From NCBI GenBank assembly GCA_002269645.1, contig NIVC01004462.1:1-44969 (forward strand): a DNA stretch of 44,969 nt, written 5' to 3'. Below the pieces are notes generated by a model that worked only from the letters and a program-made list of their open reading frames with translations, was not told the origin of the DNA and did not search any database. The translations under genes and the position numbers were made by a program. This document shows positions 7,604 to 40,760 of this stretch, one piece after another. This stretch comes from Macrostomum lignano. Taxonomy: Eukaryota. Position 1 is the first letter of the stretch. The number at the start of each line of letters is the position of its first letter.

Positions 7604-10600
7604 TCAGAAGCTGAGGCTCATCAGCAGCGCGGTGCCTCGCTTCACCCAGTGATCCGGCTGCTTCTCGCCGCTCTTCAAATCCACCGCCACCACGTAGGAG
7701 GCCCGGCCGCTGACTCCGGCTCGGTTAGGGAAGTAGTAGCACGGCGCGATGTACACGTCTGCGGGTGGAGGCGTTTGCGAGTATATAAGCTACTTGCTTA
7801 TTGACCTACTCAGAGTAGAAATGTGCACATTTGCGTCTGTATCTGCCGAGTCGGTTTGTAATATTGTCAGTAATTAATCTAATAATTATTTTAAATTTGA
7901 TGCTTGTAATGAGTAACGCTTGACTCTGATTGGTAGGGCAACCTTAGAGGAAACTTGGCCCCATTTCTGAGACCCAGAATTGGCGCTATTTCTGAGGAGA
8001 CCCCAAACAACTTGGCGCCATTTCTGAGACCCCAACTTGGCGCCATTTCTGAGGGGACTCCAAACAACTTGGCGCCATTTCTGAGGAGACCCCAAAAAAC
8101 TTGGCCCCATTTCTGAGACCCAGAATTGGCGCTATTTCTGAGGAGACTACAAACTATTTGGTGCCATTTCTGAGACCCCAGCTTGGCGCCATTTCTGAGG
8201 AGACCCCAACAACTTGGCGCCATTTCTGAGGAGACCCCAAACAACTTGGCGCCATTTCTGAGACCCCAACTTGGCGCCATTTCTGAGGAGAGTACAAACT
8301 ATTTGGCGCCATTTCTGAGACCCCAGCTTGGCGCCATTTCTGAGACCCCAGCTTGGCGCCATTTCTGAGGAGACCCCAACAACTTGGCGCCATTTCTGAG
8401 GAGACCCCAAACAACTTGGCGCCATTTCTGAGACCCCAACTTGGCGCCATTTCTGAGGAGAGTACAAACTATTTGGCGCCATTTCTGAGACCCCAGCTTG
8501 GCGCCATTTCTGAGACCCCAGCTTGGCGCCATTTCTGAGGAAACCCAAACAACTTGGCGCCATTTCTGAGGAGACCCCAAACAACTTGGCGCCATTTCTG
8601 AGACCCCAACTTGGCGCCATTTCTGAGGAGACTACAAACAACTTGGCGCCATTTCTGAGACCCCAGCTTGGCGCCATTTCTGAGGAGACTACAAACTATT
8701 TGGCGCCATTTCTGAGACCCCAGCTTGGCGCCATTTCTGAGACCCCAGCTTGGCGCCATTTCTGAGACCCCAGCTTGGCGCCATTTCTGAGGAGACCCCA
8801 ACAACTTGGCGCCATTTCTGAGGAGACCCCAAACAACTTGGCGCCATTTCTGAGACCCCAACTTGGCGCCATTTCTGAGGAGACTAAAAACTATTTGGCA
8901 CCATTTCTGAGACCCCAACTTTGCGCCGTTTCTAAAAAGACCCCAGCTTGGCGCCATTTCTTAGGAGACCTAAATTTGGCGCCAATTCTGGTACTCGAAT
9001 GGCGCCACTACCGAGGCGATCGAATCGCCCAACAAAATCAAAATGCTGCTTCAAGCACGAAGCTCACTCTTAGCCGTCTTCTTCTTGTTCTCCACCGGCC
9101 TGAACAGGATGGTGGGCATCTCGCACTCCAGCTGCATGGGGTTCGCCTCGATCAGGCAGCACTGCTTCTTGTCCCAGCCGGCGCCCTCCAAGTAGAGCCC
9201 CTTGACGTAGACGCCGTCTCTAGCCGCCTCGGGGATGCTGGAATCGTCGATGGTCTGCACAGTGAACTCCCAGCTGAGCGAATCGACGCTCACGTTGTTC
9301 TGCCGGGCGGACTTCTGCTGGACAGCCGTCAGGAAGCCTGTCGGCAGGCTGAACCCGGAGATCCAGTAGATCTTCGGCGGGTGCGTTGTCGTGGCCCATT
9401 CCTGGAATTGCTCCACCCGCTTCAACAGGTCCCGAGTCCACGAGGCGAGCGGCTTCATTGATGGATAGGTGCGCTCCCAGAGCGATGGCACTCGGGTGTC
9501 GTAGATTGCCTGTGGGTTGGCGGCAAGGACATCGGTAGCCACATGCGGCTTTTATGGGCGACTTTTTCCTCTGTAAAGTCTCTGTTATTGTCTGTTTCCT
9601 CTGTTTCCTCTGTTATTGTCTGCCTGTCCTACTGCCCGTCTGTCTAAATGTCTGCCTGTCTGAATGTCTGCCTGTCTGAATGTCTGCCTGTCTAAATGTC
9701 TGCCTGTCTGAGGGTCTGCCTCTCTGAATGTCTGCCTGTCTGAATATTTGCCTGTCTGAATATTTGCCTGTCTAAATGTCTGCCTGTCTAAATGCCTGCC
9801 TGTCTAAATGTCTGCCTGTCTGCCTGTCTGCCTGTCTAAATGTCTGCCTGTCTAAATGTCCGCCTGTCTAAATGTCTGCCTGTCTAAATGTCTGCCTGTC
9901 TAAATGTCCGCCTGTCTGAATGTCTGCCTGTCTGAATATTTGCCTGTCTAAATGTCCGCATGTCTAAATTTCTGCCTCTGAATGTCTGACTGTCTATTTG
10001 TCTACGTATCTTTCTTAGAGTCCATCTGTGCTACTGTACGCCTGTCTTAGTGTCTATTTTAGTGTCTGGTTTGTGTCTGTCTGAGTGCCTGCCTGCAACT
10101 CTTACCAGGAAGATCTGCTCCAGATCGGAGCTCATCACAACCAGACCCTGGATGCCCTTGTCCAGGTCGGTGAGGTTGCTCCTGATCAAGTTCAGCAGGG
10201 CGTTGTAACGCTCGATCTCTTGCAGCAGCACCACGTTCAGCGGGTTGGGGTCCTGCTGCATCAGCTTCGCCGTTGCCTCGTAGTCGATGTTCTCCGGCAG
10301 CTGCTTGTAGATGTTCCTGGCCAGTTCCAGCACTTTGTCTTCGCGCGACTCGCCCGCGCCGCCAGAGGTGACCTGCGGCACCAACGAGAGCAGAGTGCCG
10401 AAGAACAGGCGAGTCTCCTGAATCTGCGAGCTGATGTCCGCGTTGGGGTGCTGGCCGAAAGCCTCCGGGTGGTCGATGTTGGGCAGCATGCTGACGTACT
10501 CGCGGTAGGAGGCTAGCGAGCCGTCCCGCGGCACGTAGTAGTGCGGCAGAGAGGAGAACTTATAAAATGGCGTCGTGATGACGTCCTCGTTGAAGTAGTT

Positions 10601-16600: not shown

Positions 16601-19600
16601 GTTTGATGTCTTCTTCGAAGTCTTGCAACTTCTGGCTGATCATGCTGCCAAAAATGCGCTTCAGGTTGCTCTCGCTCGGGAAAGTCATGTTGATCTGGTT
16701 GAACTTGCTCTGCAGCCGGCGCGAGATCACAGTTCGTCCACCGCCTGGAGGTCCCATCGCGCCCAGCAGGAACATGCCCTGCACGTACTTCACTGTCTGC
16801 GCTTTCGGTCGTACCACATGCCGTAGTCGATCCACTGCTTGATGAGCTCCAGCGGCGGCTGCGAGCCGTAGGTGTCCTTGGCGGGCATGTTGAAATCGTC
16901 CATGAAGGTCAGAAGACTCTTGCCGCCCACCGGCACAAAAGTGCCCTTGGTTCGCTTCTCGACGCGACCCTCAATGATTTCCTGCACGTTATTGCTGGTA
17001 GTCTGTGCGGACATGTTGATGGTCAACAAGGACCACTTGCTAGGGTCGAGCTTCTCTACCACGCCTGTCGCAACAGAGGTCTTGCCGGTGCCAACAGGAC
17101 CCACGAGCATCACCGGATACTTCTTCTCCACAAGCTTCTGCGTCAGGTAAGAATAACGAACGGTGTCTACCGTTGGCACAACCAGTTTGTAAAAGGGCAG
17201 GTTGGGATTGTACTTCCATCCGCCTCGAAGCTGCTCCTCCCAGTGCACCCAGGACTTGTTCTTCACGTCAACATAGTACTCGTAACAGTGTCCTTGTTCG
17301 GAAAGCTGGCGTCCGCCTCGCGCAAGTAGGTGTCGATCTTCTTGCGACCGTCCTCGTCAACAGAGGCGCACACGGACCAGATCATGCAGAACTGGAACCA
17401 CAGCTCCGCCATGCGGCTGAAGTTCTCTGTATCGTTCGAGTCCAAACCGTTCTCGGGCGTGCCGAGCACGTCGAGCAGACGGGTCAGGCTGACAACGCCG
17501 TTCATTGGGGCGATCGGGATCAGCTCAGAGCAGCTGGTGCGCACCAGCTCCTGCATCTTTTCAATGTACTTCTCGAACAGGCGTCGAAGCTCCTCTACCA
17601 GCAGTTTGTCCTTCTTTTTGCGCAGCCAGGACTCGACGAACGGCTGCCAGCCGAGGTCGTTGAAGTCGTTGTACACCATGCCGCAACGGGACACTGTGGC
17701 CGGACTGGCCACCGCCAGGTCCTCGACTTCGAATAGCAGCGATACCTGTGCGATTGTGTCTTTTGTAGTAAGTTTTCTATTTCTCCTGAAGAGATCTATT
17801 TTGATATCTAGAATAAGGGTCGACAAACTCCGCCCGCGGGCCACATGCAGCCCTCGAAGTCTCTCTATCTGGCCCTCGGGTCCTTTGAAACTTCACAATG
17901 GCAATCCGGCCCGCTCAAGGTCTCAACTCTCTTACGTCCGTCCTCTCTTCCCTCTTCTATTTTCTCCCCTCGCTCACCTCTTTTTCTCTCTCTTCTCATC
18001 TCGTCTTTCATCTTTCCTCTCTTCTCTCCTCTCTTTCCTCTATTCCTTCTCCATTCCTCTCTCATCTGGCCGCAGCCATTAGCTAGGTTCTCTGTCTGGC
18101 CCTTGAGGTAAAAAAAGTTTGCCGACCCAGCTGCTCTAAGTCTCTGCCTCTGTGTGTCTTAATATCGTTCTATGCTTGTTTAATTGGTTGTAATCATTCG
18201 ACAAAAACGTACATGAAGGTATTTTATTTCTTATTACGTTTGATTAGCACACATTAATGTCCAATGTGCATAATTTCTCACCTGGGCTGGCATAGAAATT
18301 CGCTCTCCATTGATCAGCGTGAGAATCTTGTTGTCGTCCATAACGCTGTTCATCGACTCGATCCACAAGGCGTCGACAGGCCCGTCAAACAGAATCCACT
18401 TCTGATCGTCTTTCTCGTCTGGACGGGGGGCATTTTCATACAGAGGAGCATTTTAATTCTATCTTACTTGAGTAGTCAGAACTTTTCTCTATATACAGCT
18501 CATATTATATGATGTATTGTAGATTAAGAAGCACTGTGCAATTCTATAGCTATGCTTGATGGCTTTAGAGTAATAAAAAGAAAACGTAAGCAGAATGAAT
18601 GTGTAAACAAAATGCAAGAAATGTCAGGGCTCTTGAAAGTTTGTATGTAAGCCATGGTTCCTGAAGATTCGAATGTAACCCATCGCTCATGCATAACAAA
18701 AATGCGTACTAAATTTGACCTTTGAACCGTTTGTAAATGTATAGAATTCGATTAAGTTAAATAGCAAATTTCTAATAGTAAATAATAACGCGAATAGTAA
18801 ATGTTGCTTTTCGAGAGAATTATAACAAAAGAAATTGCTTTGTCTAAGTCTAAACAGTGTTAATTTTAAAATCTTACCTTCTTTGAAGCCTAAAATTCGG
18901 TTTTAGAAGAGAGATTCGAAGTGACTCAAAATTTCAAAGCAAATTTAGCCCCTGGTACGAGGTTAGGGTTTCTCAGGTGTCTCTTTATCAAACACACTGC
19001 TACAGCTCAAAATGAACTCACCTGCGCAGGTGTATCGCATAACGCTGGACAGCACACCGTCAGTCCACTCGTTGCTGGACAGATCGATCTCGCCGTACAG
19101 CTCGCCCAACGACACCGCCTTCGGGTTGATGACGTACTCCTTGGCGGGAACGTAGCCCGGTTCGCCGTCCTTGGCCAGGGCAGTCAAGGTGTCCCTTAGC
19201 AACTGCCAGGTGACCGACTTGGCCGAGAGAGTTTTGCCCACAAGCATGGTACTGTGCCGGCTGTTCTTGGTCTCAAACAGCTGGATCACCTTCTCCACGG
19301 TGAACTTCGTTCGCACCAGATTGGCCTGGTCGCACATGACCTCGACTTTGTCCTTGAACTTGGCGTAGTCCATGACAGGCGCGTCCACTCCGGGGAACAG
19401 GTCAGACACGATGCCTTTGAACAGGGGCAGATCCACTGCGGTCAGCTTGGCCAGGTTCATGTCGTTCATGGACAGCAGCAGAATCTCTTCGTCCGGCGTG
19501 CCCGGGTTCGCTCGCTTCTTCCTGCCGGCGTAGCGGAGCACGGAGACCAGGGCGCGCAGGCCGAAGTCGTAGTGGTCCTGCTTGGACAGCTTCTGCACGG

Positions 19601-22600
19601 CCAGACTGTACAGGGTGAACACCTGCGAGGGAATAGGAGGGTTTTTTCTCTTGAGTAGAGCTATGGAAATAAAGTCTAGAGCTCCTACAGTGAACTAAGA
19701 TGCAACCAACAAATTGAGGACACTTTAAATAGTCTATATTGTAAAAAACATTAATGTTAAATTCACCTGATGATACTCTATCTGTAGAATATATATTTTG
19801 ACACAGTTACACTGAGTAAACTGGGGTGTCGAACTTGAAACAGAACCTTTGATGAAGCGAATCCACTTTGGTAAATTTGTTCAACCGCATTCATTTGTCC
19901 CAAAGATTCTCTTAATCCCTCAATACGTTCGGCCCGTGTGTTCCCTGTTATCTGCAACAATAAAACGCACCTTCTTAGCCAGGATTTTCGTGTTTCCGAA
20001 CCCTTCAGCAAATAGAGTGATCTCCGCGATCATGGTGGAGTCGGGCACCACCATGGAGATCGGGCGGAACATGGACTTCAGATTGTCCGGAAGCTCTGTG
20101 CGTCCAGCGTAGCCAGGGTTCATCGTGATGAAGATGCCAACGGTTTTGCGCAGGTTGATCGACGAGCCTTCGAATAGGAACTTGCTCACTGGCGTGTTGG
20201 GGCCGGCTGTGGCCAGCGCGCTCAGAATGCTTAGGATCTGCTTGGCAACTACGGACAACACCTCGATGTTGATGCTACAATTGTTTGTGTTGGGGGGACC
20301 ATTCATAACATAATTTTTATTAGAGTCGACTGGAGCAACATACATTACACTCGTATAGAAAATGTTAGTGAAATTTTAGACCCATTTCTAAAATGGCAAC
20401 CAAAGTCAATTCTGATTTCATGGAAACGCACCGGTTGAACTCGTCAAAGCAGCCCCAGGCGCCGGTCTGGGCCAAGCCGGAGAGCATCCGACCCATCGAC
20501 TTGTAGTCGAGGCCTTCGCTGCAGTTGACCACAATGACGTACATGCCCAGAGCCTTGCCAAGATCCTTGGTTGTCTCAGTCTTTCCCGTACCAGCGGGTC
20601 CCTTCGGAGAGCCTCCTCGGTTGAGGTGCAGGGCAGTGGTCAGGGTGATGTAGCAGCGATCTGTCAGCGGCGTGATGACCAGTCGACCGCTGTTGCCAAG
20701 GTACTCATAGCCGTACTCGAACTGAGTATTTGTCTGCTTGATTACGCAATCATCCAGGTCTTTGTCCCAGAAGAAGCGCAGCTGCGCCAGCCAATCAAAC
20801 GAGTTGATGTCGCTCACGCCTGCTTTGTACAGCCTCTCGATGATGTCGCGCTGGTGAACTTCGATAATCACCTGGGCGTTCACCTTTTTCCGGTCCAGCG
20901 GATCCAAGTCCTTCCTGATCATCTCGGAGAACTTGCTCAGCATCACCACCTGCTTCTTCTTCAGCGATCTGAGCGGTTTCTTGTCGTTGCGTTCTTTTAC
21001 CAGACTGAGGGCCTTCATGACATCCTGCGTCCACTGGATCTGGCTGGAGGTGATGCACATTTGGCCTTTGTTCTCCCTGAGCCACTTGTCTCTCTTGCTC
21101 AGCATCTTCTTCAGATTGGTTCGCGTCTCCCGAAGGCAGTTTCTCAGAGTGACCCGCATCGTGTCCTCGATCTCCTTCATCCAGCTCTCCACCGGACCTT
21201 CAAGGCGAAGCGGCTTCTCAAAGTCGACGAATTCGCCGTCGTCTGCGTGCATTCGGGAGGCCTCCCAGCCCTGGACGTTGTTCTGTCGATTATTTGAAAG
21301 TTTTTGGAGTTTTATATCGCTATTCGATGATTAATAAAGATTTGTGACGTAGTGAAACTTGAAGAAAGTAAAAAACCGGTGACGAATGTCCTGACGAAGA
21401 GACACGTAAATTAGATTTTTTCCTAAAAAGCGACAACTCAAATAATAAAATCCTACAGTCCGTGAACTTAAAAAAACATTTTTGTGATATTTTTAGGAAA
21501 TTAATGCTAACCAGAACATTCCAGATGTAGGTTTCCTGTAATTTTTTGAAAATTAACAGAGTCGATAGATTGCTTAACGTAAATCAATAGATTAAGAGGG
21601 CCCAGCGTATCGTTAAATCATTCAAGGTCTGCAACTTTTAGCATCATTATCGTAGTCTCACCTTCTTAATTGTGAGTCGCACGATGTTGTCGAAGCACTT
21701 CTTGAAGTGCGGCTGGATGGCCTCTGGGTTCTTGCTCTGGCCGAGGATCTCCAGCAGGTCGTCATTGGAGATGAAGTAGAATCGCGGGAAGATCTGCCGC
21801 TTGGTTTCCAAGTACATGTCGAGCGATTTCTGGATACCTTCCAGCTTGTCGTTCATTCCGTTGAGTGTCTCCAGCACGCCAGCCTTCTTGGTGCTGCGTT
21901 TAGCGTTCTTCTCCTTGTTGATGTCAGTCATGATGACCTTCCACTGGCTGTTGATGGAATCAAAGTCGCTGGTCTCTTTCGGAAGCTGCTTGCGAATGTC
22001 CTCGCCAAGGAAGATGTTCTCCAGGTACAGCCACTGTCGCTGCACTACCTGCAGTGTTTCCAGCGTCTCCAAAATATGCGACAGGTCGCGCTCCCACTGG
22101 TCCACTTGGTGCTCGAATGGCTTCACAAACCTGGACGCTTTCATTGTTGACAGTTGCACCTGGTTGTCCTCCAGCGTCTGGTAAATCTCTTCAGTCGATC
22201 TGACCTTGAAGTGACCCTTGTCTTTGTGTGGCACAATGTCCAGATCAACTCGCTCCCAAGTCTTCTCCAAGTCGATGATGCGATTCTCAATCTCAAGCTC
22301 CTTGCGCGCTGCCGTGGAGATCTCGTTGACCAGCTCGGCGTGGGCATCGAAGCCCAGCTCGATGATCTTCTCCAGGGTGAAGTCTTCAGCGTCTTCGTCG
22401 AATGGTTTGTTCATCTCCTCCTGTAGAAATTCAATAAATTGCGCAAATTGTCAGCTGCTGAATTTGCATTGAGTAACTAAAAGATAGGATGCGTATTGGT
22501 AAAAGCAATCGCTCACCTTGATCGTAGCCCAGTGACGCGCTCTCATCGCGTCGTTTCTCAGGTCGGTGATGAGCGGCATCGTCTTCCTGAACTGGTCGAC

Positions 22601-25600
22601 CCGCACGCGGCTGGTCTCCACAACTTCCCAGTTCTTGTCCTTCAGCTCGCGGCTGAGCTTGTACAGATTCCTGTACACATTGTTAGCCACGTCTTCCATC
22701 TCGGATGCTTTGAGGTTGACGAAACGGCCGCTCTTCCACCTGTTCCAGTTTTCTTCCCATTCGTCCCGCAGCATCCAAACCTTCTCCACCGACTCAAGGT
22801 CCTAAAATTATATGACGAATATACCTTTATAATTTCTGGATAAATCGGTAGCAAGATGAAATGGACTTGTGAAACAATGAATCATTCAAATATTTGTGCC
22901 CACCACACGGCCCATGCAAAATTTGAAAACACCTGTGAAGACACAAATAATAACGGTGACGGCTGAATAAAAAACTTGGTGACATTGCGAAGAAAAAATC
23001 ATGGAATCATGGTGCCAATGGACGAACTGGTGAAATCTGTCGACACCTCGATCCATTGTGAACGGAGGAAACGGCCTCTCGTATGACCTCATCCGTACTT
23101 GCTGAATCATTGACGGATCTGGCATCGGCTCGGTGTTCAAAGTGGACACCATCGATTCGAACTCCGGGTTGACCACACTTGTGGCGACAAAATCCGACGA
23201 TCGCTCGGTGTCGGCAGTCAGGCCAAGAAGCTCCGGTTCGGGCGTGACTCCCATGGGTAGATCGTTCAGCGCCTTGATGTCGCGCATCACGGCGTTGATT
23301 GGCACCATAAACGGGCTGGGCACGTGGTCGTAGTTCTTAATGACCACCTGTTCGCCCTCAATTGAGACTACAGAGTCCATACTGTGCATCGATGTTCGCC
23401 GCGACTCCGAGTGACTTCCCGTTGCTGACGGGTCCACGGTCTCGGCGTTCTCAATCACCGTTGTCAGCATGGTTCGGGTTGTCGCCGTTCTCAGACGAAA
23501 ACTCTTTATAGTTTATGGGATTTTTATACGATACAAGCACTAATAACTGTGTTATTATGCGTCAGATTTAGTTAAAAATGCCTCTAGTAGTAAGTAGCAT
23601 GATACGAACCTTCTCCAGCGCGGCAATGTCCTTGTTTGGCGGCTGCTCAATCTTGAAGATGTTGAGTCCCTTCCTCAAGTTGGCCTCCTGTTCCTTTAGC
23701 GCGGCCAGTTGCTCTTTGAACCTCGTGATGCTCGCCAGTGCCTCCTTGGTGTTCACTGCCGATGTAAACGGACCAGTTGTTGCGAACTCGTCCACCAGAC
23801 TGCTGACTGACTTCTTGAAGTCCTCGGACTGTGAAATGAGATCTGTGAAGTAAGTGTGGAATTGGTTAGAATCATTCAAAACTTTTTAAAACTTTAGTTT
23901 GAGTTTGAAAATTTGAGTTTTAACTTACTGGACTTGAACTTTTCTTTGTGCTTTCGGAGCATCTCCTCCGCGTGCACCATGGTCTCCTTAAACTGGTCCC
24001 ACTGGTGCTTCAGATTGTAGCGCACTTCCATGATGTCGTCTCCAATGGGCACTTCGTACTTCTCCAGAATCTCGAACGGCTCCTCCAGTGGGTAGATCTT
24101 CTCCTCCAGTTCTGGAGTTTCACTGTCCAGCTTCTCCCACAGCTGCAAGGCATCTCCCAGCTCGTCCAGGGTCTGCGGCGGTCGGCAAACATTCTCGCTC
24201 ATGTCCTTCAAGTACTTGTGGAATGCCATGAGGTTGTCCGACGAGATGTCCAATAGCAGCCGCGTCAAGCGGTTCTGCCACTCTTTGCAATCAGTGGTGA
24301 TTGACATCTTCAGTTGGGTGTAGTCCAGCTGCAGGAACTTGGTCGTCACCATGGCGTCGCTGTCCATCACGCTTGTCGCCACCTCCGAGTAGCGACCTAT
24401 GTCAGCGTCGAAGGATGCCACCTTCGGGTTGCCCTTCTTGTAGACTTCGAAGAACTGGTCTTTCTCTACCTCCCAGATTTCTCGGAATTTATCCCAGTAG
24501 CTAATAGCCTGAGCAACTAGACTCTGCATCTCGCTCATTCCGTTTAGAATCTGGCCCTGAATCTTGTGAATCTCCTCGTCTCCTGCGATCATGGACAGAA
24601 TGGATTGACGGTGCGACTTCTTTGCCGTCAGCTTGTCTGGCAGCCGGGGAATGTCCTCCAGATTGCGAGTCAGCTGGCCGTTCATATTCACCACGGCGTT
24701 GTTGAGGTCCGGCAGGGGCGGGTGTACACCAGCTTCGACACGCTCGAGTCGACTTCGCGTTCCAAGTCGAGCGACACGCGGAATAGTGGCATCGGCTCGT
24801 TGCGACCGTCTCCGTTGATGGCCTTACTGAGCTCCTGCAGTGACGACTTGATGTTGAGCCGGAACGCCTCTTCACATAGTCGGTCGATCTTGTCGGTGTA
24901 GCGGTACCACTGCTGCTGGACCTCGTTGCTATCTCCGGCGAAGAATTTCTGCGTTTCGCGCATCTTCTCGATCACATCTTCGTGCAGAGCCTTCAGCTTC
25001 TCCTTGACCTCCTTCTGGTGCTCGCGCTGTCGAATTTCAAACTCGTCGTTCTGGTAGACGTGATTAGAATCAATGCTGATCTGCAGAGTCTCGCTGATCT
25101 GGATGCACAGCTCCTTGATGCGCTGGTTGGAGTCCATGTACTCGTCAACCTTTCTCTGCGCTTTCAGAGCCTCCTCTCGGGTGCCTTTGATCCAGCTCTC
25201 CAGATTGTGACTGGTCCAGTTGGTTTTGGTCATGCCGACCATGAGCTTGCGGTCCACCTGCTTGATCTGCTCTTTAAACAACAGCCGCTCCTCTTGAGTG
25301 AGCTTGGCAATGACCTTGTTGTAGTCCCTGACCACCAGCATGACCCGCTCCCGGAGGTCTCTGTAGAACTTTCGCTTCTCGTACACGTCGGCAATCCAAG
25401 ACGGCGTCTCAAAGTTGAGCCGACGCCAATAGTACAACTCTTGGAAGAGTTTCAGCAGGTTCTTGTCAAAGTGGACGTTAATCATGCCGAGCTGTTCGTG
25501 ATTTTTGGCGATGACCGGCATCTGCAGGCTCTTTACCGGGTCCTGCTCAGTGACAAAGCGGGTTTGTTTTAGTATCAGATTTTCATCAAGTCACTTTAAT

Positions 25601-29223: not shown

Positions 29224-30624
29224 TGCAGGCAAGTCAGTTGAGTTTGTGTGCTAGACTCTGCAAACAAGATTTGAAAGCATTTTTAAATTTTTTAATTTTC
29301 CTAAGCAAATATTTTTCGTCTAAGTTATGATTTTTAAAAGACATATACAAAGGCTGAAAATAATAAACACTAAAGACCTGGGTTACTACTGAAAATTCCC
29401 TGTAATTGTGTTCATCGATGTAAACATTATATTTATTGAAAGCATTGTACATGCTTCTTGAATCCACATTCAACGAATACCATTTAAGATAGTAAAATCC
29501 GAGCTACAATAATTTTTCCCAGAACTATGTATTGAGGTAATTAGCTAAAGTGTGCCTACCATGAAAATTCCGATATTTAGCAATATAAATCTACATAAAT
29601 GAATTATAAATAAAACGTAACGATATGATCAAATTAATTCATGTAATTCTCTATTAGATTCATCCTGACTCTTCCCGTAGAATGATTAGTTATTACTCAA
29701 TTATCAATAAAAATATTAGAATAGATTATATAAAAACTCTGATTAAACTACACAAAAAGAAAATTTTAAACCGAAACGTAAACACATTAAACAATGGTAA
29801 AAAACATTTGTTTAAAGAATTTTTGAAAACTAACTAGAAGTTGGTAAATGGCAAAAGACGGCAAAATTAACCTACAAAAGTTGAAACTAATATTTAGAAT
29901 TTCGAGAATAGAATTATTACAGTACACCAATAAGAACGCAACAGATACAGGTTTGCGTATTTCCAAGGTAAAGAATGTTTTAAGATTCATTCTAATCAAA
30001 GCCACTGAGTTGTCAAGGCGATATTTTTATGCTATCTTAAGAATATAAAACTTTTTTTTCATTTTAAACATGTATTTTGAAAAACAAAAGAGAACCATGT
30101 TTCGTGTGTAAAGTACCTAGACAAATAAAGCAAACCTGTTTTCTTATACTTGTCACTGAATTTGCTATACGCGCAAATTTGAAACGTAGGAAAAGTTGCA
30201 GGCAAAATTTTTATAATTAACTTTTAAACGATCGATAGTTTCAATCTGATAATCTCAACCACGCACTGATTCACTTAGTGTGACTCAGCCCTTCAGTTTC
30301 ATTTACTGATCTATCTTATAGCTTATAGTACAAAATACTTTCTATAACACATTAGACTAGAGTTTAGAGTGTAGTTGTAATAATTCTAATTTTACGCCCA
30401 AATTTGCAGGCTAACAAAGCTGTTTGACAAACTCGATTTATCAGCATACGGTTAGGACTGCAAGTTGTATTTATTCCCATCTGGTTTGGCCTTTCACTTA
30501 AACAGTTGCACCAGTAAATTGCAGTAATACAGTAGGCCTATTGTTATTGTTAGGTATAATAACAAGTACTAGGCCCTGTAGCTTAAAATATAAAACTGCT
30601 TAAAAACGAAAGTATCTGGAAACA

Positions 30625-33600
30625 ATGAAAATACAAATTGTTTCTATCATAAAACTTCTATGCCTTGTTCTTGCTTCTGATATATTTGCTCTGGAGTATA
30701 CATGTAAGTTGAAGTTTAAATATTTTGATATTTTAGTGGCTGAAATAAATTAAAGTTAAAATAATTCTTATTGTTTTGTTGTTTTAAAGCAAATTTAACT
30801 AGATTCTTGATGTAAAAGTATATTTAGCTATTGTCAAGTTCTATAATTATATTACTAATAATATACCTAATAAATGTTTGCCATTGTACACACATACTAT
30901 TAAAGTTCTAAGCCTCAATATAAAAAAGAGGAGATATGGGCAAAGTGAGACTGTGAGATGGTCCCTGGACATTTCGGTGACAAGACGTTTCGGTGACAGC
31001 CTTTTCGGTGACAATTTAGGACGTTTCGGTGACAAATTTAGACAATTCGGTGACATGTTTTAAAAATGAAAGTTAATTTTGTCTGTAAGATAATAAACTC
31101 ATGAACAAGACTTTTATACTCAGACCTCGTCATATTTTATTGTTTTGCGTTGATTTCATAACTGACTTTGTTATATCTCTACACTTAAAAAAGGGTCATC
31201 TGCATTTCTAGATAAGGTCAGTCGGCCGACGCGACACGTCAAGTCGCCTATTTTACACATTATAGCGGCATCATTTTTGCGACACTATCTGGATATATAC
31301 CTGTGTTCAAGGCAATTTGTGTAAAAAATGTACATGTAGCATATTTTCATGATCAAGTCGCCTGATCGATCTACTGTTTTGATGCAAACAAAAGTTGTGG
31401 TTGTTGTATAGTTTGTTACTCTACTATCAGGGCTATGGAAGAAGGGGCCAGGACATTCCATTGCTTTATCCCCAGCTGAACCCCGACCCCACTTTAATTT
31501 GTTGACCTGTTATATGGAAATAATGTATATACATGAAGAAATTTAGTCATGTACAATCTACATGTACAATTGTTGGCATGGTAGACCGGTAGACTGTTAA
31601 TTGGCTGTATGATTGCTGACCATATTGACCAGGAAAGTCAAAGGAAAGAGGAGGGAAAGGACGTGAGGCCACTAAGTTAATAAATTGCATAGTTCACTTT
31701 TCAGAACTTACTTTAAATGTTTATTGCTATGCTACGTAAATAGGCAATTCCAGTATTTAATCTTTCTTCATTGTTTGATCGATATTAGCACCTTTGATAG
31801 TTCAAATGTTGCAAAACAGTAAAGCTCGTTAAGTGAACCAATTGGGCTTAGTGAATTGAATTTCGATATCTACATGTATTTAATTACTAACAATGCTAAT
31901 TCTAGAATGGCAACAAGCAACAATGATTTGGTTGCACGTTAATTGCTACCGTGATAAAGCAAAATCATTGCTAGCAGAGAAGCATTGCTTGTACGGTGAT
32001 ATAATGTTTGCTTTTGCCACGACACTAGGGTTAGCAAAGTACATGTAGAACAACGGCCATTGCGTATGAAATATGAATGGGCCCCCCCATGAATTTAAAG
32101 ACTCGGTATCCGAGAGGCGCTACGACTATATACATGTAACTTCTACCAAACTCGAGCGATAGTTCTTCGAATTCTAGACGCATGCATAATTCACGGCTCT
32201 GCTGGTTCTAACCTTTAATCAGTCAAAATTTTAGTTATTTAATGGACGCGATTACTGCCCAAAATGCAACAAAAAGCTCTTCTGCACTTATTTTAGCGCC
32301 GCGTCTGCACTTATTTTAGCGCCGCATCTGCACTTATTTTAGCGCCGCATCTGCACTTATTTTAGCGCCGCATCTGCACTTATTTTAGCGCCGCATCTGC
32401 ACTTATTTTAGCGCAGTAGCTGCACTTATTTCAGTGCCGCAGGCAATTTTGGTGCCGCAGGCGCTATTTTTTGCCGCCGTAAAACATGCACATTATTGAT
32501 TTCCGTATATAACAGGTCAACAAATCAACAAACTTGACGTGTCGTGTCGGCCGACCATCAGTGTCACAATCACGTAGCAGAATAGGACACGTTTTTTTCG
32601 GCTTCAGAAGCAGTCAATACATGTTTTGTGTACGAAAATGTATTCAGCCCGGCCGACTGACCTTTTCTAGAAATGCAGATTACCTTTTTATTCAAGTGTA
32701 GAGATATAACAAAGTCTGTTACAAAGTCAACGCAAAACGATAATATATGACGAGTTCTGAGTATTAAAGTCTTGTTCATGAGTTTATTATCTTACAGACA
32801 AAATTAACTTTCACTTTTAAAACATGTCACCAAATTGTCTAAATTTGTCACCGAAAAGGCTATCACCAAAACGTCTTGTCACCGAAATGTCCAGGGACCT
32901 GTGAGATCAGGTTTTTCTCAACATAGTCTCCCCCAACCAAGATGCACTTATGGCATCTTGATTGCAGCGCCTCAATATTACTCTTGGAAGAATTGCACCA
33001 AGCAGCTCTCAAACCAAGCAATTGCAGCATCCTTCAGCATATCATTAGTGTTAAATCGCTGTCCACAGAGTGCCCACTTAAGATATAGAAATAGGTGGAA
33101 GTCGCTTGAGGCCAGGTCTGGTGAATAGGCTGTGTGTAGCAGCTCTCAGAACCCTGTGACACTGACAGCAGCCTTGGCAATCCTGCTGGTGTGGGCTGGT
33201 GCATTGTCGTGCAGCAGCACAACACCTCGGCTCAGCATCCCTTGCCTATTTTCCTTGATTGCCTCGCATAGATGGGCGATTAGGTCAGCGTAATAGGCGC
33301 CTGTGACTGTGACTATCTGCTTGTGCGGTAGAAAGTCCAGCAGCAGCGGGCCCTTGGCATCCCAGAAGACGGTCAGCATAATCTTGCCCGCACTGCATGC
33401 AGTCTGTGCCTTCAGTGGTGCAGGTGAACCAACTGGCAGCCACTGCTTAGACTTGGGATCGTGGTGATAGATCCATATCTCATCCCTGGTCACGCAGCAA
33501 GACAGAAAATTGGCAGGGTCCAGATCATAGGAGTCTAGGACAAGCTTTGAGTACTGCACCCATGCAGTCTTTTGGTCCCTTGTCAAGATTTGTGGGATCC

Positions 33601-36600
33601 ATCTGGCAGAAACCTTGGACAGATGAAGATACTAGTATAGGATCTCAATGACTTGCAGGTCAGAGTCTAGTATATGTTGCAAGTTGCCTGACTTTCACCT
33701 GCCAGTCACTGTCAACCAGAGCCTGGATGCGCTAGATGTTGTTGGCTGTGACAGCAGTCTAGGGCGTCCATATTAGGGGTCATCTTTGAGCGAGTCACAG
33801 CCTCGCTTGAACTTGGCTGCCTAGCGCTTGATAGTGAAATATGAGGGGGCAATGTCAGCGTACACACTAGCCATGGGGCTTTGAATTTCAGCAGGCTTTG
33901 AGCCTTCCAGAGTCAGAAATTTGACCACTGCCCTGTGCTCAAGCTTCAATTCTTAAGAAAATGCCATGGGGTGCTAGAAATAAAATGGTGCAGTGGGACT
34001 TAGGGAATGCAGAAAATTCTAAAAAGTTGACAATAGACTATTAACATGTGGCACTTTTAGAGCCTAAAGTTTCAACATTTTGCCACTATAAGATCTTGGT
34101 CAGGCTCGGAACTTTTTTAGTGCCCCTGTACTATTGTAGAATTAGCAAAGCATATAATAAATATGTGTAACAAAGATATAATCTATAGATAATGATAGTC
34201 TTTAAATAAAATTTTAGTTTTAGTCTTAAGGACTTTAATAAGGGTCCTTTGACTTTCTGAGTCTTTTAAGATAATTAAATTTTAGTAAAATGAAAAATAG
34301 GTTCTTTTAAAATGAAAAAAATATTATAACAATAATATTAATTTAATTATATAGAATTTCCAATTAAAATGTTTAATTTTCATTTCCAATTATTAAATAT
34401 TAAATTTTATATAGAAAGTTTAAGATATAAAAATGCTTCAAATCAAACCATTTTAAAAAGTAAGACACTATATCTTTTTTACTTTGGAAAATGAAACTTA
34501 TCTAATAAAATGACTTATAAAATTTCATTAGGCTTTAGGGTCTAAAGTCCAGTAAAGTCCCTAGGGCCTAGTTTTAGTGAATTCAACTTAAACTTTAAGT
34601 TTTGCTTAGATAAATGAAATATTTATTTTAGATTAGTAGTAATACTTATTGTGTATTATCTTATAATTTAATTTTTAATGTAATGTTTTTGAATGAAATT
34701 GTGCCAATATTTTTGTATATACTAACTAAATTGACTTACATTGTTATAAAAATATTATAAACTCAATTTTTAAGACCTTTATTAAAATAGAGAATAGTAA
34801 ATGCCTTAAATAATTAAATAAGTTGTTATAAAGCATCAACAAGTGAACAATAAACATCAAAGTTGAAAAGTGATGTTTGCTTTTAAAGGCTTGCAAGTTT
34901 TTAATAAATATTCTAACTAGACAATGTAGGGTCGACTTGGAAAAATCTAGCCTCCAAGATATATATGGCTAAGGTTTCTATTTCTTTTAAGCTCTCTTTT
35001 CTTTTCTTTCTCTTATCTTCTCTTCTCTCTTGTCCTCTTATCCTCACCTGGCTTTTGTTCTAGATGTCACCCATTTTTTATCCAGTTTTGGGGGTTCTTT
35101 CTAGGAAAAATCCAGAGAAAAGAAATGCATAAGTTGCACTCTTGGGTGAAAACTAGAATTTTAGCTAGATGAGTTGTTGGACCATTGTTTGACCCACATA
35201 ATATAGAGCCTTATGTTTTGAAAAGATTGCTTTTATAATTCCTGCTTGTATATAGAACAATATTTTGAGACATCAGGCTATGTAGCTAGTTTATATTTAG
35301 CAAATCAACCTTTTGTCAATAATTAACAATTATTCTTCATTTTTCAACCTTTTTAGACACCGATCTGCCCAGTCTGACTAAGATCAGCTCAGATTGCAAC
35401 CCAAACTATGCGGCCAACAACAGCTTCTTGGCCAAATTTAATCTCGGGAAACTCAAGAATCCAAGTGAAATCAGAGCCATGAAGGCCATCTTTTATGAGC
35501 TGCCATCTGGAGGTGAGTGACGTCCAAATACTAAAAATGGTTTGTCTATACGATATTTCCATATTCCATGTGTGATAGATTTCAGAAAAAATTGTAATGC
35601 ACTATTATAAGCCTAGTCAAAAAATTAGGAAAAGTCGGGGGTTCGATTCTCGACCCACTCAGAACAATTTGTTTCCTTGAGCAAGACACTTAACTCTACA
35701 TTGCTTCAGTTCACCCAGCTGTAAAATGTGTGGCCAGCATTAGCTGGGGTAATTAAGGGTGTGTGGCGACCCCCAGTCCTTGGACTGAACAGCCTTCAGA
35801 TGCGCCGCGCAATAGCTGCAGCTGAGCTGTCGGTTGCACATCTGCCTATTAGGGCAGATTTAATCAATTATTATTAATACTTTGAATAAAGTATAAACTA
35901 CGGAAAATATGAAGCTTAAATTAAATGGCAACCAAGGTGCCAATTTGCTATCTGGGCCCCCCAGAAATGATCAGTAAAAGTCGTTTACCCGTGTTGCCCT
36001 CTTCAGAACGCCGCAGAGTTGAAATCAACAGTTGGGCTTCTCTGGAGCCGCAGTTTCAAGCGCCAGGGTTTCAACCCAACAGGCGTCACATCGGCTTCTT
36101 GACGGTCCGCCTGGCTGACGAGAACTCAACTAGCGGCCTCACCGAGTGGCTCTGGTCTCAGAAATTTGAATTCACCAGCTGCGGTGTTGAGAATCGGTCA
36201 GCTGTCTGTCTGTGCGATCCGGTCAATTCTTACAATGGTACGGAGTGCAGGCCCGGCTCACCGGACTGCCGCTGCACTCCGCAGGCCACCAGCTCAGACT
36301 GCAGCCTGTGCACCGACGGCACCTACAGAGATTATTCCCGCTACAGTCTTGGCTGTATCTCTTGTCAGTGCAGTCCGCATAACTTTGCCGGCCCGTGCGC
36401 CTGGAGGCACGTCGGCGACCCCGACTGGAGCCCTGGCGGCAGCGGCGGCGGTGGACTTAGCCAGCGAGTGTGCATCGGCTGTCGGCACGGGTTTGTGGGT
36501 GACAACTGCCTGGCGCCCAGAGATAATAGCGGCATGGGCCTGGCGGCTAAGGTTGGTTATTATGTCTGCATAGTTTTTACTGTTTTTCTATGGTGATTTC

Positions 36601-37516
36601 ATTTTATTTAAAATATTGCTCATCTTTTAAAGTATCTTATCTCATTTGTCAAAGATTTGCGTCTCAACATTATAATGTCACTCTCATTATCATGTAGTCA
36701 CTCTTATTATCACTTAGTCACCCTTATTATCATATTGTCACTCTCATTATCATATAAAGTCACTCTTATTATCATATTGTCACTCTCATTATCATATAGT
36801 CACTCTCATTATCATATAAAGTCTCTCTTATTACCATATAAAGTCACTCTTATTACCATATAGTCACTCCTATTATCATATTGTCACTCTTATCATATAG
36901 TCACTCTCATTATCATATAGTCACTCTCATTATCATATAGTCACTCTCATTATCATATAGTCACTCTCATTATCATATAAAGTCTCTCTTATTACCATAT
37001 AAAGTCACTCTTATTACCATATAGTCACTCCTATTATCATATTGTCACTCTTATCATATAGTCACTCTTATCATATAGTCACTCTCATTATCATATAAAG
37101 TCACTCTTATTACCATATAAAGTCACTCTTATTACCATATAGTCACTCTGATGATCATATAATCACTCTTATTATCATATAGTCACTCTCATTACTGCAT
37201 ACTCGCTCTCCATCGCACTGCTCAAACACCCGCTCAGATATTCCTGGTCCTGGCCTGCCTGCTCTGCTCACTCGCTCTGCTAGCCGCCTTTGTCATTCTG
37301 CGGCGCCAATGCCGGCGCCGAGCTCAGCGCGCCGCGCGCCACTCCCTGGCCGTTCAGCGCCTATTCAGCCGGTTCAAAGACGACACCAGCTTGGAGGCGG
37401 AGGCCGCGGAGTCCAGCGCCATCTTGGCTGAGGATGACGACTTGCAGAGGGCCACTCAGCAGCTGAGGCTGGGCGCTGACCCCGTGTACCAGCCTACCAC
37501 CGTCTCCATCACGTGA
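30625..37516 (+). CDS. Type I membrane protein with laminin-type EGF-like Cys repeats (loosely MEGF9-like); exons 30625-30703, 35357-35512, 36007-36551, 37238-37516 (~352 aa)
   Basis: Exon 1 is MKIQIVSIIKLLCLVLASDIFALEYT (signal-like, donor GTAAGT). All junctions are phase-compatible (1,1,0). Cys pattern CRCTPQATSSDCSLCTDGTY...CISCQC...CIGCRHGFVGDNC; TM IFLVLACLLCSLALLAAFVIL followed by RRQCRRR; tail ends DPVYQPTTVSIT*. Exon 1 is the least certain part. Confidence 0.7.
30960..32899. mobile_element. 1940-bp non-autonomous DNA transposon with ~250-285-bp TIRs, GG...CC termini and 8-bp TSD (TGTGAGAT); Merlin-like by structure
   Basis: Left end GGTCCCTGGACATTTCGGTGACAAGACG; right end CGTCTTGTCACCGAAATGTCCAGGGACC. 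TGTGAGAT at 30952-30959 and 32900-32907. The arms stay complementary inward to about 31228 and 32650. No coding ORF inside. Confidence 0.88.
32283..32445. repeat. 23-bp tandem repeat (CTGCACTTATTTTAGCGCCGCAT), ~7 copies, inside the TIR element
   Basis: Read directly. Confidence 0.92.
32910..33950 (-). pseudogene. Mariner transposase pseudogene with in-frame stops and frameshifts
   Basis: ORF 33146..33586 covers the catalytic core; stops in the HTH region (TIKR*AAKF, DDP*YGRP). Confidence 0.88.
35630..35880 (+). mobile_element. 5'-truncated tRNA-derived SINE with CORE/V/Nin-type central domain
   Basis: B-box-like GGTTCGATTC at ~35641, followed by CCTTGAGCAAGACACTTAAC...TTGCTTCAGTTCACCCAGCTGTAAAATG (resembles conserved metazoan SINE central domains) and an (ATT)n-like tail. 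No A-box seen. Confidence 0.7.
36670..37195. repeat. AT-rich 20-23-bp minisatellite (TAGTCACTCTCATTATCATA) in intron 36552-37237
   Basis: Read directly. Confidence 0.92.
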
Positions 37517-37532
37517 TCTGCTGAGTAGGCTA

Positions 37533-38053
37533 GTGTCAGATCCAGTTGCTGACAGTGTCATAGAGAGGGTGTCAGATCCTGTTACTGACAGTGTCATAGA
37601 GAGGGTGTCAGATCCAGTTACTGACAGTGTCATAGAGAGGGTGTCAGATCCAGTTACTGACAGTGTCATAGAGAGGGTGTCAGATCCAGTTGCTGACAGT
37701 GTCATAGAGAGGGTGTCAGATCCAGTTGCTGACAGTGTCATAGAGAGGGTGTCAGATCCAGTTGCTGACAGTGTCATAGAGAGGGTGTCAGATCCAGTTA
37801 CTGACAGTGTCTTAGAGAGGGTGTCAGATCCAGTTGCTGACAGTGTCATAAAGAGGGTGTCAGATCCAGTTGCTGACAGTGTCATAGAGAGGATGTCAGA
37901 TCCAGTTGCTGACAGTGTCATAGAGAGGGTGTCAGATCCAGTTACTGACAGTGTCTTAGAGAGGGTGTCAGATCCAGTTGCTGACAGTGTCATAAAGAGG
38001 GTGTCAGATCCTGTTGCTGACAGTGTCATAGAGAGGGTGTCAGATCCAGTTAC
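37533..38053. repeat. 36-bp minisatellite (GTGTCAGATCCAGTTGCTGACAGTGTCATAGAGAGG), ~14.5 copies, starting 17 nt after the stop codon
   Basis: Read directly; explains ORFs 37361..38029 and 37533..38117. Confidence 0.95.
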
Positions 38054-40174
38054 TACTTACAGTGCCACTAATTCAAGCTACATGTCGAAGCACCTCGTTT
38101 ATCACATCCGGTATTAGTTTTTTGTGCTAAAATTTTCAAAGTTCTGCACCATTTATCAGCATAGACTGCAGACAATAGAGCTATAGTTGCACTGTTAAAC
38201 ACCGTTTTTATTTATCAGCTATTAATTTTATGGTTCGCGCATTTTAATATCCCAAATTTAACCAACACGCTCCCAATTTTTTATTAGTTGTTAGTTGAAT
38301 ACGCAACTCGCATGTCCAGTGCGCATTGGTCATGATATAGCTTCATCATCTCCACGCGGTGAATTAAGGTGTTCAATGTACCCTTTAGTTACTGATAGCT
38401 TAGACTAACACGCAAATGTTGTGAATTTTATTGTTATAAAATATTTTGGCTGTGTTTTTACACTAATAATTTCATTTAGAATCACTAAGTCATAACTCAT
38501 AATTGGAATCTGTCACAGTGTCTTGTATATTCTGTTGGTATATGTTTGATGAATTTTTCTTATCTATTCATTATTGTCTGGTGATCGGATTTTTATTTAT
38601 GCGCTTTTTTGCTTTATCCAGGTTTGTTCGATTCTGAGTTAATAGCCAATCAGATCGGGTCAGGAGAGGCGGGACTGCAATGTACATTGAAGACGAACTC
38701 GTCCCCCGCAGCCAATCAAATCGGGGCTGTATGTACATTGAAAAAAAAACTCGTCCCCCGCAGTCAATCGGATCGGAGCAGGAGACACTTTGATAAAGTG
38801 TGCAAAGTTTGCAAAACAGAGTATAAATTTTTATACCAATTTTAAACATCCGCGTCATATGGTTTGAATTCAATTTTTCCGGTTTCAACTTTTTTTCTGT
38901 CTTGGTTTGGCTGTGCTTTTCTCGTTTAAGCTGCAACATTGCTATTGTCTTAATTTACCGTGTGAAATCTTTTCCATTTCTAGCGATTATTTCTGAGCAG
39001 CTGTTAGCAGTGTAACTATATAAAGTACATGTTTATATTGGTTACTTATATCTACTACTTGTGAAAGACGCACAGCTTATGTTAAACCAGCGGCTGCTTA
39101 GCAGAGATGAATATTGTGAGCAAAGTTGGTAATAATGTTATTTTTACTCGCTAAATATATCAGATGCAACTTGCACAACTATCTCTATCACATAAAAAAC
39201 GTTAAAGATTTTGTTTCAATAATTTCATCAATAAAGATTTGCGCCTAGCGAATAGGACTAGAAGTGGTTTGCAGTGAAACGCAGTGTGTATTTTAAAAAT
39301 AAAACAGACACAACAAATTAAACAAGCGTAATAAAACTTACTACTACTGAAGATAGAAGTTATTAGTAGTAAGTAATGCAACCAGTAGCCAAAAAAGACG
39401 TGCGTGCGTAAGAGAGAATGTTTTTATCTACTGATACGATTCAGCAGATTCGTGCACTTATATATTTTTAACTTATTTTAACAAACACGATTGACAGATA
39501 AGACTATTGGACTGGAATCCAGTCAGACCTTTATCCAGTCAGTCTCGTACTGAAGAGTAGTACAGGCAATACGCATTGTAAAAGTACGCGTGTACTTTAC
39601 TATTGCAAAAGTACATGCGCACTTTACTTGATCAAAAGTTGTGTACGTTTGTACACACGCAAGCCAAATGTACATGCATTATAGGGAAAAGTACCTCTAG
39701 TACTTAACCGAGAAAAGGAGCAATAATAAAATGAAGATTCGCTAAGTGTAATGAGTCATAGTATGGATACAAATCAAACTCAATAAGAGCACTAAGAAGC
39801 CGTAAAAATTCGAATACTTCGCACAAAGAGTAAAGCGTGGTGAGTTCTGTCCTGACTCCAGTCTGATCCATCACAAACTTAAGTTATATATTCTATTAAA
39901 GAGCAATAATAAAGGATTAGTTTAACAACAATTCGACAGCTGATGAGGACTGAGGGATGCCGTTAACAGAAGATATCCGCATTATAAGTATAGTTTTGTA
40001 AGATCTGCATACGCTATTGAACAGAATCATTAAATTAAAATGTTTTCTGGGTGTTGAATAAAATGAAGGAATTGAAGAAATAAAAACAGTGTGCGGAAAC
40101 AGAGGAAAAGACAGGTGGATGGATAAAAAGACTAAACACGGTGGTATTAACGGAACAACACATGAATGGGAAGG

Positions 40175-40755: not shown

Positions 40756-40760
40756 ACAGG

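Follow-up and report, generated by a model that had tools for sequence, protein, structure and literature searches.

The window, that is, the whole stretch of 44,969 nucleotides analysed here, carries on its minus strand a dynein heavy-chain gene whose best match among the dynein heavy-chain classes is DNAH2, the inner-arm dynein f (I1) beta heavy chain. Its 844-aa exon scored 1351 bits (9fqr_D0) and 1347 bits (8j07_k9) against DNAH2 and 1035 bits against Chlamydomonas I1-beta, with the next dynein class at about 850 bits or less, so that the assignment to DNAH2 made in the initial annotation is borne out; the nearest DNAH2 relatives found are only 49–60% identical. Three homopolymer frameshifts interrupt the dynein CDS and are presumably assembly errors. 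The intron of interest and its two neighbouring exons are the following.

23610–23842, minus strand: DNAH2 exon 5' of the intron, the last exon of the tail, ending ...NKDIAALEK at 23610 in phase 0 (gene model, tblastn and human alignment)
22802–23609, minus strand: intron of 808 nt, phase 0, gttcgt...ttttag, between the exon that ends at 23610 and the one that starts at 22801
22517–22801, minus strand: DNAH2 exon 3' of the intron, the start of the linker (Pfam DHC_N2), beginning DLESVEKVW after ttttag (gene model, tblastn, alignment and Pfam)

The upstream exon end and donor read ...DIAALEK/gttcgtat on the minus strand, and the tblastn matches of P0008, P0010 and P0015 all stop at 23610. When spliced across the intron, the flanking peptide (LEK/DLE) aligned without a gap to human DNAH2 residues 1149–1319, in keeping with the earlier claim that the two exons join seamlessly and collinearly with vertebrate DNAH2, and the junction falls inside LEKDL, which is invariant in all five homologs compared. 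Pfam DHC_N2 (PF08393) starts four residues before the exon junction, PF25007 was also found, and the tail-linker region is collinear with the DYH2-5-8_CC and DHC_N2 domains. Judged by these domain matches, the junction is the tail/linker-motor boundary of DNAH2, and the site had rightly been placed ahead of the linker. An insertion at LEK/DLE was absent from every homolog aligned (five homologs; human DNAH2).

The position and phase of this intron are common to frog (L003) and Schistosoma margrebowiei (L002), and it is therefore ancient, which rules out intron gain or an introner as its origin; it is absent from eight other eukaryotic loci. With a GC content of 0.47, the intron as a whole lies above 14 of the 15 other introns scored (0.27–0.44). 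A GC-rich stretch from about 23500 to 23000 is set between typical AT-rich intron ends, the last 198 nt of the intron having a GC content of 0.34, and it was here that an open block had been noticed.

23504–23609, minus strand: AT-rich 5' part of the intron, GC 0.31, with two TATAAA motifs
23099–23503, minus strand: 135-codon block of 405 nt, stop-free, between AAG acceptor-like and GT donor-like sites

The block is in frame, stop-free and GC3-rich as originally described, its 405 nt giving exactly the translation stated there, with a GC3 of 0.69 and a GC content of 0.56 that is indeed unlike that of the AT-rich introns of the gene (0.373) and close to that of the exons (0.564). Its GC content at codon positions 1/2/3 is 0.55/0.44/0.69, compared with 0.55/0.34/0.80 in the exons. 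The full stop-free frame is longer than the block, extending on the minus strand over 208 codons from 23512 to 22889, with a stop at 22888–22886 and the first in-frame ATG at 23470. As the host intron is ancient and the block occurs in no homolog examined, the block itself is lineage-specific.

An exon-versus-intron Markov score proved to be mostly a GC detector, antisense frames of exons reaching about 95 bits, and frame-specific measures were relied on instead. Codon periodicity of the block was significant (chi-square P = 2.6e-4), and its codon log-likelihood was +0.14 per codon in frame versus −0.32 to −1.03 in the other five frames and −0.77 ± 0.15 in shuffles (z about 6), giving a six-frame score pattern the same as in real exons. 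Given its composition, a stop-free frame of 135 codons has a probability of about 3.5e-3 and one of 208 codons a probability of about 2e-4. The codon adaptation index (CAI) of the block was 0.573, against 0.395 ± 0.096 for off-frame windows and 0.34–0.49 for its own other frames; this is at the very bottom of the range of the dynein exons (mean 0.688, minimum 0.568), and in both CAI and GC3 the block falls below all dynein exon windows but one. A CAI this low can be explained equally well by decay or weak selection and by low expression. No such coding-like segment was found in the other introns of the gene, making the block unique in this respect. The block looks like real protein-coding sequence, a lineage-specific orphan.

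Within the open frame the coding signal is unevenly distributed. The maximum coding-versus-intron segment runs from 23488 to 23114 (94 bits, about 125 codons), with 0.71 bit per codon versus 0.80–0.83 in the flanking exons; ATG 23470 lies within it, and its 3' end falls 15 nt short of the donor at 23099. From the AAG to ATG 23470, the 11 codons look non-coding (−4.4 bits, CAI 0.415), and so does the frame beyond the donor, so that the extent originally assigned to the block held as a stop-free frame but not as coding sequence, the signal being restricted to about 23488–23114 and missing from the 5' 11 and the 3' 70 codons.

23099–23470, minus strand: best-supported coding unit, 124 codons, from ATG 23470 (gaACCATGc) up to the final codon preceding the donor
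22886–23098, minus strand: read-through tail, 70 codons plus TGA at 22888–22886, non-coding-like, with a T-rich hydrophobic stretch

In the read-through tail, GC content at codon positions 1/2/3 is 0.47/0.39/0.49, GC3 falls from 0.49 to 0.37, the score is −0.47 bit per codon, CAI is 0.39 and periodicity is lost (P = 0.44); a stop-free frame of this length has a probability of 0.027. Its hydrophobic stretch (KD19 1.98) was predicted as a confident helix. The predicted 124-residue product of the coding unit is acidic (19 D/E versus 6 K/R) and rich in Ser, Thr, Pro and Val, and the block contains RRTS along with several S/T-P and acidic Ser motifs. Single-sequence AlphaFold2 gave the block a pLDDT of 33–41, and a fold search was therefore not worthwhile.

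Searches for relatives of the block gave no Pfam family at E ≤ 10, no match in an exhaustive HMMER search of 1.84 billion protein representatives, nothing in a 5.8-billion word search or among PDB sequences (best E = 0.68) and nothing in tblastn-confirmed scans of metagenome and viral contigs. Similarity to transposable element proteins was not found in these searches, and neither the databases searched nor the 45-kb window yielded a match to such an element or to another gene, a possibility that the initial annotation had raised. An exact look-up found neither the 194-aa ORF nor the 844-aa dynein exon ORF on record; as the host's own dynein ORF is likewise unrecorded, absence from the databases says nothing about expression of the block. 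A second copy or exon duplication was absent from the 45-kb window and from the orthologous introns (frog, Schistosoma and 10 metagenome loci), and terminal inverted repeats around the block were not found in the window. A processed retrocopy was rejected on the lack of an A-run before 22839 and the loss of codon bias in the last 70 codons, and a non-coding RNA was ruled out by Rfam, which gave no match at gathering score in the window (the sole match in the intron had E = 0.72), and by the lack of any tRNA.

Three splice-like sites in the intron bear on how the block could be expressed.

23501–23523, minus strand: acceptor-like site aaatcccataaactataaag/AGT, with A at −3 and a 47% pyrimidine tract; PWM 0.1 bit
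23091–23101, minus strand: donor-like site CAA/gtacggat, phase 0, in frame with the exon at 22801; PWM 6.6 bits
22930–22952, minus strand: strong acceptor-like site tattatttgtgtcttcacag/GTG, first exon base 22932; PWM 8.8 bits

The donor at 23099 outscores 5 of the 17 true donors and stands at the 96.8th percentile among decoy GTs, and since both it and the acceptor at 22801 are in phase 0, splicing between them keeps the frame. The AAG acceptor at 23503 scores below 16 of the 17 true acceptors, 15 of which are CAG and two TAG, with none having A at −3; it is the only in-frame acceptor at the 5' edge of the block. Other in-frame acceptors did not exceed about 2 bits, and the figure for the best of them is put at about 0.4 bit or less, the median of the true acceptors being near 6. 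The phase-0 splice sites reported on both sides of the block are thus present, with a good donor and a poor acceptor, and the acceptor had already been recognized as weak. Further downstream, the acceptor-like site at 22932 is stronger than the true acceptor at 22801 (8.8 versus 6.5 bits), and a splice into it from either donor gives 16 codons and then a stop.

Upstream of the coding unit, two further motifs were seen.

23523–23528 and 23505–23510, minus strand: TATAAA motifs, 58 and 40 nt upstream of ATG 23470, respectively

These two copies compare with a single sense copy in the 5,249 nt of the 14 other introns; in AT-rich DNA, such hexamers are weak evidence. No upstream ATG occurs between 23528 and 23470. 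A bacterial-type promoter and terminator scan was uninformative for a eukaryote.

Taken together, we tentatively favour the reading that the block is an orphan coding piece in an ancient DNAH2 intron, built as a first coding exon and not as an internal exon, while holding it at somewhat less than even probability. A start of its own fits best because of the two TATAAA motifs, the ACCATG at the onset of coding signal and the in-frame donor of normal strength at 23099, and a first exon is preferred to an internal one because no good in-frame acceptor was found. Transcription would start within the intron at about 23500–23480, or an equivalent 5' end would form there, translation would begin at ATG 23470, and the 124-codon exon would be spliced from the donor at 23099 to the acceptor at 22801 with the frame kept. 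The predicted fusion product would lack the tail of about 1,225 residues and would carry a disordered, acidic, Ser/Thr-rich N-terminus of 124 residues in front of the complete linker and motor, while the canonical mRNA would skip the block entirely. Promoter activity, use of the donor and production of a protein are what we infer for the block from these features. Of the options originally offered, an alternative first exon from ATG 23470 was in this respect upheld in part, in that it appears to fit the anatomy best (ACCATG, coding onset and donor in frame). Against a fusion to the motor counts the stronger acceptor-like site at 22932, which lies between the donor and 22801. Dynein tails dock axonemal heavy chains on the doublet, and a tail-less chain could not dock by the usual route, so that its function is hard to picture. 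A literature search found no precedent for such an axonemal dynein isoform, and we know of no N-terminally truncated isoform from an internal promoter for any axonemal dynein heavy chain. That an internal promoter would yield an mRNA for a tail-less motor free of the I1/f docking complex, in which the new N-terminus would act as a targeting or regulatory module, we regard as unlikely.

A close rival, to which we give perhaps a one-in-three standing at most, is that the block is a non-functional insert, namely a stretch of coding DNA that moved from another site of the genome into a once-short AT-rich intron, is spliced out with it and is recent enough to retain an open frame and codon bias. 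It may derive from another lineage-specific gene, namely from its 5' end, or from part of an unsampled mobile element. The antiquity of the intron combined with the lack of the block in every homolog, the GC-rich stretch between AT-rich ends and the low CAI and GC3, which are expected of decay or a foreign source, are all in line with an insertion, and a mariner remnant in the same window likewise keeps a GC3 near 0.6. The block is also bracketed by a short direct repeat.

22825–22839, no strand assigned: copy of a 15-nt direct repeat, partner 23504–23518, 13 of 15 bases matching; the pair brackets 679 nt including the block

This repeat could be a target-site duplication, but its frequency is at chance level (family D3; about three such pairs expected in 851 nt by our estimate). 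An insert is further opposed by the lack of transposable element protein domains and of any homolog among the protein representatives, by the lack of terminal inverted repeats, poly(A) or a second copy in the window, and by the total lack of stops in 124 codons. Moreover, the coding signal ends at a normal donor in phase and starts at a Kozak ATG with TATA motifs, which would be coincidences for a random fragment.

A copied promoter together with its first exon would explain those boundary matches without coincidence.

Far less probable is a cassette exon, in which all 135 codons from 23503 to 23099 would be included in a minority of DNAH2 mRNAs to form a disordered, phosphorylatable loop between tail and linker. 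The block is divisible by three in length, with phase-0 sites at both ends, no intervening stop and a donor of ordinary strength; weak splice sites are typical of alternative exons, and the RRTS, S/T-P and acidic Ser motifs would suit such a loop. However, the AAG acceptor with its poor pyrimidine tract has no good in-frame substitute, the block's first 11 codons do not look coding, and inclusion would break up the invariant LEKDL where DHC_N2 begins, a place at which no homolog has any insertion; on the acceptor and the first 11 codons in particular, the cassette exon proposed in the initial annotation is disfavoured.

We consider still more doubtful a small nested gene starting at ATG 23470, encoding either an unspliced protein of 194 residues with a C-terminal hydrophobic helix or, via a splice from 23099 to 22932, one of 124 + 16 residues. 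It would draw on the same TATA and Kozak ATG features, on the frame staying open for 70 more codons, on the predicted helix and on the strong acceptor-like site, and TATAAA at 22831 could serve as a variant poly(A) signal. The tail nevertheless resembles T-rich non-coding DNA in its periodicity, GC3 and CAI, the 16-codon second exon is also AT3-rich, and neither AATAAA nor ATTAAA occurs anywhere in the 808-nt intron.

Very improbable, and the least supported of the options originally proposed, is a truncating last exon by which the main transcript would enter the block and read to the stop at 22886 to give a tail-only DNAH2 fragment, since, although the frame is open from 23503 to 22889, this depends on the weak AAG acceptor and there is neither coding signal after 23099 nor a canonical poly(A) signal. 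An equally slight chance is left to an open frame in a GC-rich intron patch without coding history: GC-rich DNA does yield long open frames and antisense frames of real exons score highly in the exon-versus-intron comparison, but the GC-independent frame tests and the low probability of a stop-free frame oppose it.

The predicted first exon can be compared with several known systems. Titin reportedly has an internal-promoter isoform, an example of an alternative first exon giving an N-terminally truncated giant protein. As in such isoforms, a promoter-like region and an ATG lie here in an intron of a very large gene, the donor is in frame with the downstream exons and the predicted product lacks the N-terminal third; unlike in those isoforms, the unique N-terminal peptide predicted here is an orphan. 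With lineage-specific cassette (exonised) exons the block shares its frame, a length divisible by three, AG/GT flanks and absence from orthologs. Exonised sequence is usually derived from transposable elements, short and intron-like in composition, whereas the block has host-like codon bias, no usable acceptor and no transposable element signature. Like nested or orphan genes, the block lies in a host intron as an ORF on the same strand, has an ATG of its own and lacks homologs in other taxa, but its codon bias stops at an internal donor and not at a stop codon, and the intron has no poly(A) signal. Finally, a discrete GC-rich insert in an AT-rich ancient intron, with a possible 15-nt duplication, recalls insertions of gene fragments or 5'-truncated retroelements, from which the block is set apart in that it lacks a poly(A) tail, resembles neither reverse transcriptase nor transposase nor gag and occurs only once in the 45 kb.

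A simple ab initio gene model took most of the block as an exon (23449–23024), adding 142 residues at LEKDL. Should the block prove a silent insert, it would serve as a warning to annotators, and in either case gene models should keep 23610 to 22801 as the canonical junction. If the block is expressed from its own start, a highly conserved giant gene would have taken up an orphan coding exon at one of its domain boundaries, and the product would be the first natural isoform known to us in which an axonemal dynein heavy chain is motor-only.

The minus strand of the window encodes a large gene that begins at ATG 29223 and continues as far as 7646 or beyond. Its 844-residue exon gave human and other vertebrate DNAH2 as top matches (1351 and 1347 bits), with 1035 bits against Chlamydomonas I1-beta and about 850 bits or less against all other heavy-chain classes, which identifies the gene as the DNAH2/inner-arm dynein f beta ortholog. 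The closest DNAH2 sequences found were only 49-60% identical. Three apparent one-base deletions in the homopolymers CCC, TT and AAA (24720-24722, 17284-17285 and 16803-16805, minus strand) shift the frame where the homologs are uninterrupted (VYT/PPLPD, KDTV/YEYYVD and WYDRK/AQTVKY); as the remaining ∼13 kb of coding sequence is intact, errors of long-read assembly are the likeliest cause, rather than a pseudogene. A strong acceptor-like site, tcttgtttgcag/AGTC (29258-29260), 34 nt 5' of the dynein ATG and with no TATA motif nearby, suggests that the 5'UTR contains an intron or that a spliced leader is trans-spliced here. At the other end, exon 7758-7646 appears genuine, and the last coding exon was not identified among the tandem repeats (7646-9068).

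Minisatellite arrays are numerous in the window (1120-6450, 7952-8948, 9543-10057, 36662-38144 and 40162-44825; periods of 8/16, 18, 20, 21, 22, 23, 36 and 57 nt); two lie within 3' introns of the dynein gene, and several yield long spurious open frames, by which an HMM gene model was misled past 7646. Broken frames around a mariner-type transposase remnant (33149-33631, minus strand; PF01359, E=2.6e-18) point to a decayed element. Upstream of the dynein gene, ∼1.4-1.8 kb of AT-rich DNA is bracketed by long inverted repeats (30960-31228 and 32650-32899), complementary at 93% over 169 nt and extended by adjacent arms; the arrangement resembles a foldback element or a non-autonomous DNA element. 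A 223-aa ORF (35925-36596, plus strand) resembles exons in composition and encodes a laminin-type EGF domain (PF00053, E=6.8e-5); it is probably a piece of a neighbouring gene.

The candidate block lies between two dynein exons (slashes denote splice boundaries):

23842..23610, minus strand, upstream exon, 3' boundary LEK/gttcgtat
23609..22802, minus strand, intron of 808 nt, phase 0
22801..22517, minus strand, downstream exon, ttttag/DLESVEKVW

The initial annotation had described these exons as joining seamlessly and collinearly with vertebrate DNAH2, and their spliced peptide indeed aligned without a gap to human DNAH2 1149-1319, with LEKDL unchanged across five homologs; the canonical DNAH2 mRNA omits the block. 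The Pfam linker domain DHC_N2 starts four residues ahead of the junction, which puts the intron exactly at the tail/motor boundary.

The block itself (23503..23099, minus strand) comprises 135 codons in a stop-free frame, and its translation agreed with that originally quoted. Its GC content is 0.56, compared with 0.564 in exons, 0.373 in introns, and 0.31 and 0.34 at the ends of its own intron; by codon position it is 0.55/0.44/0.69 (chi-square P=2.6e-4), the exons giving 0.55/0.34/0.80. The composition-corrected codon log-likelihood was +0.14 per codon in frame and between −0.32 and −1.03 in the five remaining frames, the same six-frame pattern as in both flanking exons, with −0.77±0.15 after shuffling (in-frame z ∼6). 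The CAI was 0.573, against 0.688±0.048 (minimum 0.568) in dynein exon windows and 0.395±0.096 in off-frame windows. No comparable segment was found in any other intron of the gene.

A coding-versus-intron Markov score reached its maximum of 94 bits over 23488..23114, and amounted to 0.71 bit per codon from ATG 23470 to the donor at 23099 (0.80-0.83 in the flanking exons). The 11 codons between AAG 23503 and ATG 23470, the earliest in-frame ATG of the open frame (context gaACCATGc), scored negatively and had a CAI of 0.415. TATAAA occurs at 23528 and 23510, 58 and 40 nt 5' of this ATG with no ATG in between, its sense frequency in 14 other introns being 1 in 5,249 nt; AT-rich sequence gives way to GC-rich at about 23497, ∼30 nt past the first TATA. 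Position weight matrices built from 17 introns of the gene assigned 6.6 bits to the donor 23099 (CAA/gtacggat), which exceeds 5 of the 17 true donors and ranks in the 96.8th percentile among decoys; it is in phase 0, matching acceptor 22801. A pyrimidine-rich, acceptor-like CAG at 22932 (AG 22934-22933) scored 8.8 bits versus 6.5 bits for 22801; joined to either donor, it would allow 16 codons before a stop.

Because a promoter-like motif precedes a Kozak ATG at which the coding signal sets in, and 124 host-like codons run to a normal in-phase donor at its end, the anatomy fits a first coding exon with its own start. We adopt this reading tentatively, at less than even confidence; to that extent the earlier proposal of an alternative first exon from ATG 23470 holds. 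Translation would start where the coding signal begins and the exon would close at 23099, where it stops.

The main rival, only slightly less likely, is that the same module, or another coding fragment, was inserted into the intron and is inert. An intron at identical position and phase is present in frog (GAGAAG/gtaaga...ctctag/GACCTG) and Schistosoma margrebowiei (GAGAAA/gtaatt...cttaag/GATTTA), and the exon of a eukaryotic metagenome locus begins at the same residue, but in eight other eukaryotic contigs the junction falls within one exon. This distribution marks the intron as ancient and repeatedly lost, and the block as a lineage-specific addition. That restricted presence, the low CAI and a possible flanking duplication would fit an inert insert; the direct repeat concerned (23518-23504/22839-22825, 13/15 identical) encloses 679 nt, and about three such pairs are expected by chance (estimate). 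Terminal inverted repeats and poly(A) were absent around the block. The transposable element or other gene that it might have matched was sought in protein, contig and RNA collections and not found: there were no relatives in Pfam, a 5.8-billion word search, PDB, or metagenome and viral contigs, 0 HMMER matches at E<=1e-3 over 1.84 billion representatives, nothing resembling it in Rfam and tRNA scans, and no second copy or similar sequence in the window or related loci. The source species is apparently absent from protein collections, so these negatives are silent on expression.

Inclusion as a cassette exon, as first proposed, is improbable. Of the phase-0 splice sites claimed at both edges only the donor is of normal strength; the acceptor (AAG/A at 23503, 47% pyrimidines), already called weak, reached 0.1 bit, lower than 16 of the 17 true acceptors (15 CAG, 2 TAG), and no alternative in-frame acceptor in the block exceeded about 2 bits. 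Insertion would also split the invariant LEKDL at the linker start. A stand-alone nested gene is still less probable, and the suggested tail-only protein very much so; against both stand the character of the 70 codons past 23099 and the lack of a poly(A) signal. These codons look non-coding (no periodicity, P=0.44; CAI 0.39; GC3 dropping to 0.37; stop-free with P=0.027), the T-rich DNA encoding a hydrophobic stretch, helical in AlphaFold, and the 808-nt intron contains neither AATAAA nor ATTAAA. Pure chance is equally remote, a 208-codon open frame (23512 to 22889) having a probability of ∼2e-4 at its own composition.

As a first coding exon, the block spliced from 23099 to 22801 would place a 124-residue N-terminus on a tail-less product that keeps the linker and motor in full. 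This N-terminus is predicted to be acidic (19 D/E versus 6 K/R) and Ser/Thr/Pro-rich, includes the motif RRTS and, at a pLDDT of 33-41, is probably disordered. A simple HMM gene model made during the analysis took 23449..23024 as an exon, and annotation pipelines could thus easily mis-include the block.
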